Shown piece after piece: positions 23,855-60,000 of a stretch of 64,000 bases of DNA. The stretch is from NCBI GenBank assembly GCA_039096225.1, contig JBBPEB010000026.1:496001-560000 (forward strand). The letters are read 5' to 3'. The number at the start of each line of letters is the position of its first letter. The first letter of the stretch is position 1. The position numbers and the translations under genes are program-made. This DNA comes from Blastocystis sp. Blastoise. Taxonomy: Eukaryota; Protista; Bigyra: Opalinata. Below the pieces are notes generated by a model that was not told the origin of the DNA, made no database searches, and saw nothing but the letters and a program-made list of their open reading frames with translations.

Positions 23855-26024
23855 TCATTTACTTTGAATAATAAATAACAAGATCTCTTACCGATGAATA
23901 AGTACAAATAACCATGATTATTGTGAAGATAACAATTAATATATAATCTCCAATAAGTTCAATTTTAGAAAGAGGATTCTTTGTTTTATAAGACCAAATA
24001 ACATTTAATAATATAGGGAATATTAATGAACAAAATGAAATCGTAAATGCACCAAGTAAAAGAGTATGTTAAGAAATATATAAAGATATATATAATAATT
24101 GCTATAATAATAATAATTGTTATAATAATAATTGTTATAATAATAATAATTGTTATAATAATAATAATTGTTATTAATAAAATATATAAAGGATATTTAG
24201 ACTAAAAACAGTATCAAACGAGGGGACAAAGAATGAAATGATAGAAACAATAATAGCTTGGCATACACGTGATAAAATACGTTTATAATCAGTAATAAAT
24301 ACTTTATTACAAGTAGGGTTAGAAATATTAGCTTCAGTAATTTCTAGAATACCCAAGAATTGAAGAGGATAATTACCCAAACAACTAATAATCATAGCAA
24401 TACAAATCTATATAATAATAATAATAATAATAATAATAATAATATATATATATATATATATATATATACAATAACACTCATAATAGAATTAGGATCTAAA
24501 TTCTTTGCAATATTACCTTGAATACCATCTATATATATAATATATATAACACTAACATAATAATAAGATTAATTAGAAGAAGAAGAATATTAATATAATA
24601 ATAGATATAATAATAATAATAGATATAATAACAATAATAGATATATATATATATATTTGGGTCATTTTGGAAGATGAGGAAGAGTGGAATACCAGTAACA
24701 AGATAAATGACGCAGAGTGACGTCATGGATACAGCAATTCCCGTGTTTACTTTAGAACGAACTCTCATTCGCATATCATTATATATAAATATAATAAGTA
24801 TAATAATTAGTATAATAATAATAATAATATATAATAATAATAATAAGTATAATAATAATAATAATAATAATAATAATAATAATAAGTATAATAATAATAA
24901 TAATAATAATAAGTATAAGTATAATAATGAATAATAATATATAATCATAAGTATAACGTACATATAAGGGGAATAGCATAAAAGTGAATGAAGTGGAGGA
25001 GATGAAGATACCAAGATTGCTGACTACACTCTCAAAACTAACGGGCCAAAGATTAGAAGCATTAACAGAAATACCATAGGACATACCTCCACTTATGAAT
25101 AAAATGATAAAGGAGAGAATAAGAGCAAATAAACCAAATCCAGAAATACATACTAATTGACTATATATAATAATAAGTATAATAATAATAATAATAATAA
25201 TAATAATAATAATAATAATAATAATAATAATAATAACATACGTTGTATCTTTTAATAATAAGAACATAATTCCTAATATAGTCATAAGAATACATGCATA
25301 TAAACGGATGTCACTTTCAGGAAGAGTAACACCTATTTGAGACCAAGGTAATTGAGTAGTAAAATCAGTTAAAATAATCTATATATATATATAATAATAA
25401 TAATAATAATAATAATAATAATAATAAAAATAACTTAGATAATAATAATAATAATAATATATATACCATAGTACCCACATTACATCCCCAAAGAGTAATA
25501 AGTAAGCATATAGTAATAGCATAATAACCAAAATCACCTAATAAAGCATAAGAAAATAAAGCATATTCACTTTTTGTTTTTTTGGCATTATAATTATGTG
25601 TTGGTTTGGCAACATAATAATTTTTTATTTTAAGTAAAATAACAGAACAATAATAATAGGCCCAGCAAACGAATAAATAAAATAGTAAACCAATAACGAT
25701 ACCCACTTTCGACATTGCAATTGGAACTGCAAAAGCACTTAAACCTAGAGCTGATTTTGTGATATTTATAGTGAATTGAGGAAGAGTTAAACCATATTCT
25801 TTAGGACGTTTTTTATGTTCTTCAGGAATATCAGTCGCAGCCAGTTCAGAAGCAGCTTCTTTATCAAATGTAAGTGCAGTTTCATTATTTAAACCATCCT
25901 TTATATCCTTCATTTCTTTGGACTCATCGACAACATTATCAGGAACTGTGACTGTAACTTGACTATCGAGAGTCTTAGGGCTTGCTACAACCTCAGCAGG
26001 AACCTCAGGGTTGACAACAGACAT
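23855..26024 (-). CDS. Amino acid/auxin permease (Aa_trans, SLC36/38-like) transporter, 6 introns, three of them non-GT-AG
   Basis: INITKSALGLSAFAVPIAMSKVGIVIG (TM1-2), GIQGNIAKNL, SCLGNYPLQF, VPSFDTVFSL|IGAFTISFCSLIFP; multiple TM segments; ATG 26024, TGA 23855-23857. Confidence 0.88.
24056..24196 (-). other. U12-type (minor spliceosome) AT-AC intron in amino-acid transporter
   Basis: 5'SS ATATCCTTT; branch TTTCTTAAC ~12 nt before AC; removal restores FSL-IGAFT. Confidence 0.92.
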
Positions 26025-26793
26025 ATTTATCAATATTTATTTAAAAAAAGAAAGAATTCTTTTTTCTTTTATATGATTTTTCTTTTTTCTAAAAATAAAA
26101 AAATAAAACAACAAAAACCAGAGAATTCATGGAAGTTTCTCTATTTTCTCCCAACCATTCTTTTTTAACGACCATTCATTGATCATTTTTATAAAAAGCC
26201 GTTTTATTTCATATTCTCATAATCCAATCATTTGTATATATATTTATAAAAATAAAATTAGGTTGGTAATTCCCTATTTGTGAATTATGTTCTTTTTGCT
26301 GTTTATTAACCAATTCCCTTTATTTCCCCTTCTAAAGAAGAAATTATAAACTTTCATTTACCACTTAATATTCTCTTTATTCATGATAATAACATGATTC
26401 TTCTTCTTCAATTTATTCTCTTAGTGTCTTGGAAGAAAAACGAGCTATCAACCAAAAGAAGCCTTGTTAATCATATATATTGAATATATAGTGTCGTTTT
26501 ATAAACACGACAAAAAATAGAGTTCAAAAAAAAAGAAAACATAGACAAGAGAATTGAATAGAAGAAAAAAGAAAAAAGAAGAAAAGCATAACATACAAGT
26601 ATAGCATACATATGAAAGTAGATCTAAAAAAAAAATGAAAAAAAATTCTTTAAAACAGAAAAACGAATAGATTCAGAGAAATAAAAAAAATAGGATGACA
26701 ATGGAGATAAAAATATATAAAATACTACCTTGCATCTAAATAGTATTCGTTTATTATCTCACCTAAACCAAATAAATTGCTAAGACGAAAATA

Positions 26794-57221: not shown

Positions 57222-60000
57222 ATGACTTGCTTATCAAACTCGTCATTTCCTTATAAGGCTGTTCTTGCCCTCACTTTCGCACAATTCTCTTCGTATTATA
57301 TAACCCGATTCATCAGTGCAGATATCAATACTATCACCAAGATCCTTCTACCTGATGTAAATTCAAATATTTGAAAATACGAATCATCTATATATTATTT
57401 ATAGATACAAAATTCAGAAATTGGTTATTATTCAGGATATTTGATTTCTATTTACTATATTAGTAATATATTTGGCAGTCTTTTCTGGGGTATTCTATCT
57501 GATCATTCTGGAAGAAGAAAACTATTACTCATTATCTTTCCATGTAAGAATATTTATAGTAATACATATATCTATGATTTACTATAGTGATGACAATACT
57601 AATTCTGATTTTCAGTTTTATTCAGAATTATTGGCTTGCTCTAACAATTCGTTTTATTTGGGGATTTGTTGATGGAAGTGTTGGTCTTGTCAAAACAACT
57701 GGTTGTGAAGTTTGTGATGACGCAACCATGTCCTTATGCATGTCTTATTTAATGTTTGGAGTCGGTCTAGGAGGGTATTTATTTGTTAATTCTTCTTCTT
57801 CTTCTTTTTGTTGTTATGCATTTATTTTTTTTTTGTTTTGCATATTATTTTTAATGCTTATAAACAATATATATAGTGCAATTGGACCTATTGTTGGTGG
57901 CTATTTGATTGATATTCACAACACGTTCCCTCAATTAATAGTCACATTTCCTTTTCTAAAAACTTATCCATTCTTCCTTCCCTCTCTATTTGGGGCTATT
58001 TTAATGATTCTATCTACAGTATTTTTATATTGTGCAGTACCAGAAACACTTGTAAAAGTATATATATAAATATATATTAACTATATATATTTACATAGAA
58101 TAGTATTTTTTAATATTTTTATTATGTTAAACATTTCAATTATATTTCTATTCTGAAACTGTCTCCATTAAACTATATTTCTATTAGAATTCTAAACAAG
58201 ATATTGAAGCGTCGTCTAGTAATTCTTCGAATTCAATTAGTGTTCCACTTATCACGATGACGCCACCTTCATCACCTCGAACTGGATCCACAATCAAATC
58301 ACGTGCTAGTCAAGTGATTACATTTATTAAAAACTATAAAAATTGTCTTCTCAGTCTATTCATTTATTGTATATATATTATATGTTTTTATTTATATATT
58401 TATTTGTATATTCAATAAACATCTATATTTATATTTTTTTATATATTCATTAAATATCTATTATTTCTATTATCATCTATATATATAAATATATATAGTA
58501 CTTGCTGCATATAATCAATCTTCATTTGATGCTGTATTACCTCTATGGCTTAGTAGACCTCTAGAATCACGGGGATTTAATATGTCTACTATGGAGGTAT
58601 CGACTTTGATTGGATGCACCACTCCTTTTCAAATCATTATTAATTATATATATATATATATATATATATATATATATATATATATATATATATATATATA
58701 TATATATATATATATATATATATATATATATATATATATATATATATATATATATATATATATATCTTTTTAATGTATATTTACTTGTATATTCTATGCT
58801 TTATATATATATGAATATATATCCTTTTATATATTTATATTATTATTGTTTATCATTTAATATGATTTCCCCTGTCTTCACAGTACTTATCTCTCCTGTT
58901 CTCTCCGCTATTTGGCCATATACGTCGCAACTTAAAGTACTTTCTCTTCTCTCAGGTGCTTTTCATAGTATATATATATATTAACTATTTTATATTCTAT
59001 CAATAAATCATATTTCCCTTTATAAATTCTCAGTATATATTCATATTTACTTATTACTAATCATTCTCTATAGTTTTAATTCCTTTTTGTGGTTATTTTA
59101 ACAATAATAAATCAGTAGTATATTATTATTAATTATGCTATTATAGTATTCTTTAGAGTATCTTTTTAATAACCGCGAATATTATTGGAATCTATATCAC
59201 AAGATGTCTTATGTTTAGATATCCTTTCTATACGCTGTTATTATTATATTATTATGTATTCTTTATTATATTATTCTTTATTTTTTATTATATTATTTAT
59301 TATTATTTATATTAATAATAATATATTATTGGCTTTTTTATTGCCATTCATTATTATTTTATCTTTTATACCCGTATATCTTAACTCTTGTACTATTATG
59401 TTTACATTTATTTCAAATTCTGTTCCCGCCAAATTCAGAGCTCAATCAAATGCTTGTGGACAAGTAGCTCAAGCGATATCTCGTTTTATTGTATATATAT
59501 TATATATATATTAGATTCTTCTTAATAATTTATTATTATCATATTAATTTATTATTATTATTATTATATTATTATTATTATTATTATTAATATTATTATT
59601 ATTATTATTATTATTATTATTATTATTATTATATAACTATATATATAACTAAATATAGGGTCCCTCCCTTGGTTCTGTGTTATTTGCATGGAGTGAAACT
59701 AATCATATTTCACCTCCTTTCGATTATGCACTCTCTTTCTATATATCCTTTTCTATACTATATATATATATATATATATTATACATAATAAATTATGATT
59801 TTTTTTTATTTATTTATTTATAATAAAAAGTTTTTTCCAAAAATTCATGATAATTATTATAACTATTCTATATTTATTTTATATTCCAATATGTACTATA
59901 GTTTACTTAATAAATATTGAACATTGAAGGATTATTTGGTATATGTATCTGCGGAACACTATTCTTCTTTAGTGACACAATTAATAAGAGAATCAATTAA
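57222..60000 (+). CDS. MFS transporter (ZIFL/DHA1-like), 11 introns including two AT-AC and one further AT-donor intron
   Basis: [20 protein letters not shown] (motif A), [49 protein letters not shown]|[12 protein letters not shown]; stop 59998-60000. Confidence 0.9.
58645..58765. repeat. (TA)n dinucleotide run of ~120 nt at an MFS intron donor
   Basis: Perfect TA run directly after the exon sequence FQIIIN. Confidence 0.95.
59219..59393 (+). other. U12-type AT-AC intron in MFS transporter
   Basis: 5'SS ATATCCTTT; branch ATCTTAAC then TCTTGTAC; removal gives [16 protein letters not shown]. Confidence 0.82.
59743..59922 (+). other. Second U12-type AT-AC intron in MFS transporter
   Basis: 5'SS ATATCCTTTT; branch TTTACTTAAT ~11 nt before AC; removal gives [15 protein letters not shown] (last TM helix). 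Confidence 0.9.

Follow-up and report, generated by a model that had tools for sequence, protein, structure and literature searches.

Four very probable U12-type AT-AC introns in a 64-kb stretch of Blastocystis sp. Blastoise, whose genome seems to carry a thousand or more minor introns

Four introns with AT-AC termini were analyzed in a 64,000-nucleotide (nt) stretch of the Blastocystis sp. Blastoise genome (contig JBBPEB010000026.1, positions 496,001 to 560,000; referred to below as the window). They are very probably genuine U12-type introns, i.e. introns of the minor spliceosome, of the AT-AC subtype. One is found in an Aa_trans amino-acid transporter gene, one in a class-2 DHODH gene and two in a gene for an MFS-like transporter, and the minor introns of the whole genome seem to number about a thousand or more. 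As a rule such introns are rare, of ancient origin and subject to slow loss; well-supported enrichment has been found in few cases, namely in Physarum and, less markedly, in Blastocystis ST1. The tortoise isolates form a deep branch of the Blastocystis clade, their introns are of normal length, so that U12 signals are cleanly readable, and they appear to have more minor introns than ST1. The isolate studied here is most likely Rus-B from the Russian tortoise (33.3 Mb, 23.1% guanine plus cytosine (GC), 33 scaffolds, 8,547 genes), the description of which makes no mention of U12 introns (Lind et al. 2025, PMC12129017). Three points are new: how large the complement of the tortoise lineage probably is, that it consists almost exclusively of AT-AC or AT-AN introns with a relaxed donor position +6, and that it is invisible in public annotation.

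The window is intron-dense and has a GC content of 21-28%. All four introns (Table 1) end with AC, and their donors follow the consensus /ATATCCTT, which is rigid from +1 to +7: three carry ATATCCTTT, and the DHODH donor ATATCTTTT differs by a C-to-T change at +6. The branch sites fit a TTCCTTAAC-like consensus complementary to GUAAGGAA of U12; in introns 1 to 4 the branch adenosine precedes the 3' end by 13, 9, 9 and 12 nt, respectively. Each intron contains an in-frame stop, its excision restores the reading frame, and its GC content (10-15%) is below that of the flanking 60 nt of exon (22-35%). Since the bare donor word ATATCCTT is unenriched in the window (9 seen, 8.6 expected) and hence uninformative alone, the whole configuration of motifs and frame was tested. 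An earlier sequence-only reading had proposed AT-AC introns of the U12 type at these four places, the end of the DHODH intron being only implied; motifs, spacing and frame confirm all of them, and donor, branch site, AC end and a branch-to-3' distance within the usual 8-15 nt or so are as expected for that type.

Table 1. Predicted U12-type introns and the genes that hold them. Positions are those of the window unless a sample locus (L005 to L010, 10 kb each) is named.
Feature	Position	Strand	Length, phase	Donor	Branch site	Terminal AC	Remarks
Aa_trans amino-acid transporter gene	23859-26024	minus					ATG at 26024; about 7-8 introns, one U12-type; 3' end uncertain
U12-type AT-AC intron 1	24196-24056	minus	141 nt, phase 1	ATATCCTTT 24196-24188	TTCTTAAC 24075-24068	24057-24056	in Aa_trans gene
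Class-2 DHODH gene	31788-34174	plus					10 exons; NCBI locus WA158_004352
U12-type AT-AC intron 2	33343-33513	plus	171 nt, phase 1	ATATCTTTT (T at +6)	TTCTTTAAT 33497-33505	33512-33513	in DHODH gene
MFS-like transporter gene	57141-60000	plus					stop 59998-60000; start uncertain; from ORFs and gene model
Possible fifth U12 intron (candidate)	58819-58881	plus		ATATCCTTT		58880-58881	in MFS-like gene
U12-type AT-AC intron 3	59219-59393	plus	175 nt, phase 2	ATATCCTTT	ATCTTAAC 59378-59385	59392-59393	in MFS-like gene
U12-type AT-AC intron 4	59743-59922	plus	180 nt, phase 0	ATATCCTTT	TTACTTAAT 59903-59911	59921-59922	same MFS-like gene as intron 3
Sample U12 intron	L005 5574-5646						strict HMM run
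Sample U12 intron	L006 8952-8700						strict HMM run
Sample U12 intron	L006 4183-3885						strict HMM run
Sample U12 intron	L007 2669-2877						strict HMM run
Sample U12 intron	L010 7520-7430						strict HMM run
Sample U12 intron	L007 3482-3554						added by homology, NAGLU gene
Sample U12 intron	L007 4048-4139						added by homology, NAGLU gene

For the Aa_trans and DHODH genes the predicted junctions are proven by continuity of the profile and of the homologues, respectively. Pfam searches were carried out with exons taken singly. The exon upstream of intron 1 matched positions 278-351 of PF01490 and the downstream exon positions 353-408, the split codon corresponding to position 352; word searches with two Aa_trans exons did not find relatives. 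The spliced DHODH model is collinear with seven homologues in local alignment, with no gap at the junction, and an alignment with human DHODH begins at the second residue of the exon downstream of intron 2. Exon-by-exon Pfam scans of the MFS-like gene gave no match, and its family name is a putative one, taken from motifs and a reading of the transporter-like sequence.

The public annotation hides at least the DHODH minor intron, and some AT-AC introns are missed in it. The deposited protein KAK8797142.1 (WA158_004352, 351 aa) is identical to the DHODH exons of the window. The NCBI model has, in place of the U12 intron region, a pair of GT-AG introns with a micro-exon of 8 nt, TCTTAATG (33428-33435), which falls within intron 2. 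As a consequence the protein jumps from ...QAKEHL to DGIVV... via 'DLN', which only two GT-AG introns and the micro-exon can yield, and 45 residues present in all homologues, including the K-L-S-P-D-L strand, are missing (affected region 33180-33550). At least one public gene model is therefore corrupted by a work-around for an AT-AC intron. Surveys of this genome that build on the annotation will therefore under-count minor introns and contain damaged proteins.

The four places were also analyzed with a hidden Markov model (HMM) gene-finder of our own. It had exon states of period 3 and two intron classes, GT-AG and, as an option, U12, the latter defined by donor, branch site, a 3-12 nt spacer and terminal AC or AG, and was trained on the long open reading frames (ORFs) of the window. 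A U12 intron was called at all four places, in each case with the proposed 3' splice site and in three with the proposed donor. With hard motifs, 11 U12 calls were obtained in 223 kb, compared to four with a reversed-motif decoy and two with an A/T-swapped decoy, and some of the decoy calls only bridge true U12 introns. Soft motifs had been dropped because of over-calling (26 real versus 13 decoy calls), and a scan combining a relaxed motif with an open frame suffered from excessive noise in coding sequence of low complexity. In the strict run, intron 3 was given an alternative donor, GTATCTTTT at 59158, which was rejected as the resulting GT-AC pairing is atypical; the donor ATATCCTTT at 59219 was kept because its AT pairs with the terminal AC. 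The gene-finder is noisy: eight of nine DHODH introns were found, false introns were placed in AT-rich membrane proteins and genes were merged, and the intron denominators it provides are good to about 15-20%.

The assembly (33.34 Mb, 34 contigs, about 22% GC) was then searched for components of the minor spliceosome. Genes for U11 (62.9 bits) and U6atac (63.8 bits) scored above the Rfam cut-off, and a full-length U12 gene was recovered at 46.8 bits (E 6.1e-7), below the Rfam gathering score of 53 bits. U12 keeps GUAAGGAA and U11 keeps AAAGGG, and a zf-U11-48K domain is encoded in the genome (40.5 bits). The search for minor small nuclear RNAs (snRNAs) that had been suggested along with the four introns was thus successful for U11, U6atac and, under the cut-off, U12, while U4atac was not retrieved with Rfam. 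Separately, a 19-nt sequence, GTCCTTTTTTATTGAGGGA (G000:C13:966080-966098, minus strand), is complementary to the U4atac-binding parts of the genome's own U6atac and was noted as a candidate 5' end of U4atac.

By analogy with established U12 biology, U11 (5' AUAAAGGGC) would recognise the donor ATATCYTT and the branch site TYYTTAAY, which lies 9-13 nt before the 3' end, would pair with U12 (GUAAGGAA), after which U6atac would replace U11. C-to-T variants are frequent at donor position +6, at two C positions of the branch site and at the final C; all of them could still pair via G-U wobble and would fit drift in a genome of about 22% GC. The U6atac gene (L002 1501-1617; G000:C21:544821-544937, minus strand) has GAGCCGAGAGAAGG where the Rfam consensus has GAAAGGAGAGAAGG, so that the donor-pairing segment reads GCCGA and not AAGGA, and G14 is a C. 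In human U6atac, G14 is reportedly the partner of donor position +6. About 38% of the U12 donors of this genome have T at +6, and this, together with the G14-to-C change, may reflect a relaxed pairing between U6atac and the donor.

To estimate the density of the class genome-wide, an unbiased sample of 150 kb was used, made up of one 10-kb stretch from each of fifteen contigs, all taken at preset coordinates. The strict HMM run yielded five U12 introns and homology added two, both in a NAGLU gene (L007 2564-4200; G000:C4:202564-204200), which thereby holds three U12-type introns in 1.5 kb. The first NAGLU junction is exact (Pfam positions 39-70, then 71-100); the exon upstream of the second intron matches profile positions 171-188, and after the third, apparently an AT-AT intron, the next exon resumes with FIWC, matching human NAGLU residue 379. 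Pfam searches with several exons of the sample loci were uninformative save for a weak tetraspanin match. With seven U12 introns among 521 predicted introns the fraction amounts to 1.3% (bootstrap over loci 0.2-2.8%), which extrapolates to about 1,550 U12 introns (220-3,300) among about 115,000 introns. In the window, four of about 147 predicted introns (estimate about 125-150) are of the U12 type, i.e. 2.7% (2.7-3.2%), and the window is about twofold richer than the genome average. The sequence-only reading had arrived at about 4%: its four introns stand, its denominator of about 100 was somewhat low, and the window value does not apply to the genome. Its statement that the density is high holds well, as minor introns usually make up less than 0.5% of introns; they account for 0.276% in human and 0.554% in Basidiobolus, which has been called one of the highest values outside Amoebozoa.

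In addition, the whole genome was screened with sequence patterns. A wide pattern, ATATCCTT...YTTAAY...AC, was discarded as dominated by chance (1,409 matches versus 1,492 for a reversed control); since the reversed control was a poor match as well, matched spacing controls were used instead. The pattern ATATCCTT N{20,320} CTTAAY N{4,11} AC gave 433 matches, compared to 253 with the control spacing N{18,25}, and the corresponding pattern ATATCTTT...YCTTAAY gave 454 at spacing 4-11 compared to 366 at 18-25. The excess of 268 (about 270) is a firm and conservative floor for the number of U12 introns, because the control spacing also counts true introns when an AC follows in the downstream exon. 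As this sub-class includes only one of the seven sampled introns (four of 11 with the four of the window), a total near or above 1,000 is consistent with the floor. The strict analogue for GT-AG introns had only 75 matches in the genome, many of them inside repeats. AT-AC introns strongly dominate among the U12 type here, as implied by the earlier reading; this dominance is probably stronger than in ST1. Several dispersed repeat families also surfaced in the genome-wide screens, with identical matched strings on many contigs, e.g. GTATCCTTGTACAGTAGAAAAAAATC..., which occurs about 12 times. Taken together, the class is estimated to comprise roughly 1-1.5% of about 100,000 introns, in the order of 1,000-1,500, almost all AT-AC or AT-AN and often several per gene.

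Several points weigh against these conclusions. Splicing at the four coordinates is deduced from sequence and not from RNA; 35% of the 31-mers of 57001-63000 were present in run X1 and 10% in a poly-A gut metatranscriptome, which is compatible with expressed exons and no more. The two predicted MFS junctions are supported by motif and frame and not by homology, the RNA-seq-guided public annotation does not use the AT-AC intron of DHODH, and U4atac gave no match in the Rfam search of the genome. The genome-wide estimate depends on 150 kb, a noisy gene-finder and clustered events, with three of the seven introns in one gene. Finally, the strict pattern occurs three times in the window, where 0.5-0.8 are expected per 64 kb, so that the window is an enriched place.

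It is very improbable that the four introns are removed by the major spliceosome as U2-type AT-AC introns or are mis-delimited ordinary introns. The sequence-level nature of the evidence and the lack of an Rfam match for U4atac would be in keeping with this, but the donors are ATATCC or ATATCT and not U2-like such as ATAAGT, the branch sites match the GUAAGGAA site of U12 at 9-13 nt from the 3' end, and U11, U12 and U6atac are present in the genome. Moreover, neither DHODH nor Aa_trans offers a GT-AG intron that would keep the frame, and the public GT-AG work-around for DHODH deletes the 45 conserved residues. A more serious alternative, although we consider it doubtful, is that the window is an outlier in a genome whose minor-intron fraction does not exceed 0.9%, as in Blastocystis ST1, so that nothing beyond a known trait of the genus would be seen. 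The low count of the strict pattern (about 250-430 matches in 33.3 Mb), the lower end of the bootstrap interval, the clustering in NAGLU and the two to four false calls per 223 kb in the HMM decoys all speak for it. The point estimate nevertheless is 1.3%, the spacing-controlled excess covers but a sub-class of the introns, and in absolute terms the numbers exceed those of ST1 several-fold, given about three times more introns in this genome. Minor introns of the AT-AC subtype, probably numerous in the genome, remain the preferred interpretation.

The question of gain or retention was approached by comparing intron positions with relatives, which covered the DHODH intron, i.e. one of the four in the window. 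A search with the DHODH exon led to P0122, an ORF of 187 aa from gut-metagenome contigs that is 71% identical. Its DNA (L019, L024) comes from a relative with introns of 30-40 nt and 36-42% GC, found in at least 47 gut-metagenome assemblies and probably a Blastocystis subtype. The DHODH gene of this relative has a 64-nt ATATCCTTT...GTAC intron (L019 2772-2835; L024 2968-3031) at the same codon and in the same phase (...YEQK|K/Q...). As the intron is common to both, it predates the split of the two lineages and was not gained in the tortoise lineage; at least part of the complement is older than this lineage. Positions absent from relatives had been expected of an expansion, and the DHODH position is present in a divergent one.

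That the abundance stems from recent gain or expansion confined to the tortoise lineage is unlikely. Several U12 introns occur in single genes (two to three in the MFS-like gene, three in NAGLU), and six of the 11 scored U12 introns are in phase 0, a pattern which Larue & Roy suggested may mark young minor introns; both features would agree with gain without demonstrating it. In animal DHODH, gene fragments point to an intron some 10 codons downstream of the Blastoise position, which is weak evidence in the same direction. On the other hand, the sole comparable intron is shared with the divergent short-intron relative, and ST1 already has hundreds of such introns (253-346). The lineage-specific gain that had been proposed from the window consequently does not follow from these data. 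As a tentative proposal, which we hold to be possible rather than probable, the genome may contain well over 1,000 minor introns, the largest known complement outside Physarum, almost only AT-AC or AT-AN, several per gene, with an excess of phase 0 and perhaps still growing, and with a U6atac without the G14 partner of +6 that matches the relaxed +6 (C or T). Larue & Roy 2023 (PMC10639083) asked for more genomes of the Blastocystis clade to learn if the AT-AC-rich and phase-0-rich set is young; comparing positions one by one across the eight published genomes would allow a direct test of gain against retention.

Besides the four introns, a possible fifth is located in the MFS-like gene (Table 1), with its best branch-like site 21 nt from the 3' end. 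It sits downstream of an (AT)60 run (58645-58765); in this region (58597-58883) the intron that includes the run lacks a GT donor behind ...PFQIIIN, the likely end of the exon. Two further candidates, GTATCCATT at 7262-7350 and GTAACC at 22765, were rejected as they have no branch site, and two GTATCCTT sites are not introns but lie within an ORF of 3,277 aa. This intron-free ORF encodes HRM and He_PIG domains. Separately, a dynein heavy chain is spread over two adjacent long ORFs (2,091 and 1,881 aa) in an organism described as lacking flagella; the dynein ORFs and the 3,277-aa ORF are found at 9593-21559 and 41859-51689. An intron-free legumain (Peptidase_C13) gene is located at 53027-54259 on the minus strand, with six or more paralogues at other places of the genome (53-79% identity).

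Compared with known systems, the introns described here resemble the U12 AT-AC introns of metazoa and plants in the AT-AC termini, the donor ATATCCTT and a branch site like TCCTTAAC placed 9-13 nt before the 3' end; U11, U12 and U6atac genes are likewise present, with conserved recognition sequences in U11 and U12, whereas U6atac departs from the Rfam consensus in its donor-pairing segment (GCCGA for AAGGA). In human, AT-AC is a minority subtype (about 26%), but it is dominant here; in human, phase 0 is avoided by minor introns, and a gene rarely holds more than one of them. Physarum polycephalum is another protist in which minor introns are far denser than the usual value of under 0.5%, with signs of gain. 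Its splice-site features are transformed and mostly non-AT-AC, in contrast to the near-canonical AT-AC motifs of Blastoise, and the number of introns here is probably far smaller. In a passage of PMC10639083 that cites Larue, Elias & Roy 2021, the Physarum density is said to be one that 'dwarfs all other known instances'.

The closest counterpart is Blastocystis ST1, of the same genus-level lineage, for which 346 U12 introns in 319 genes were described (Gentekaki et al. 2017, PMC5608401), the figures implying about 37,000 introns in all and a U12 fraction of about 0.9%. Larue & Roy 2023 (PMC10639083) counted 253 minor introns in ST1 (77% AT-AC, 49% phase 0, mean 42 bp) and found 11 of 12 lost in ST7. 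Together these counts correspond to about 0.7-0.9% of the introns of ST1, for which all minor snRNAs are reported. Like Blastoise, ST1 has minor introns in the hundreds, far denser than in most eukaryotes, a strong AT-AC bias and a weak or inverted bias against phase 0. Differences concern length (50-300 nt here, about 42 nt on average in ST1), the seemingly still rarer GT-AG subtype, the T at +6 in about 38% of donors, and number: an estimated 1,000-1,500 or so introns here versus 253-346, and about 1.3% (0.2-2.8%) versus 0.7-0.9%, so that the absolute number is probably 3-5 times that of ST1. The Blastoise set is a long-intron version of the complement already described in ST1, and its high density is a known Blastocystis trait.

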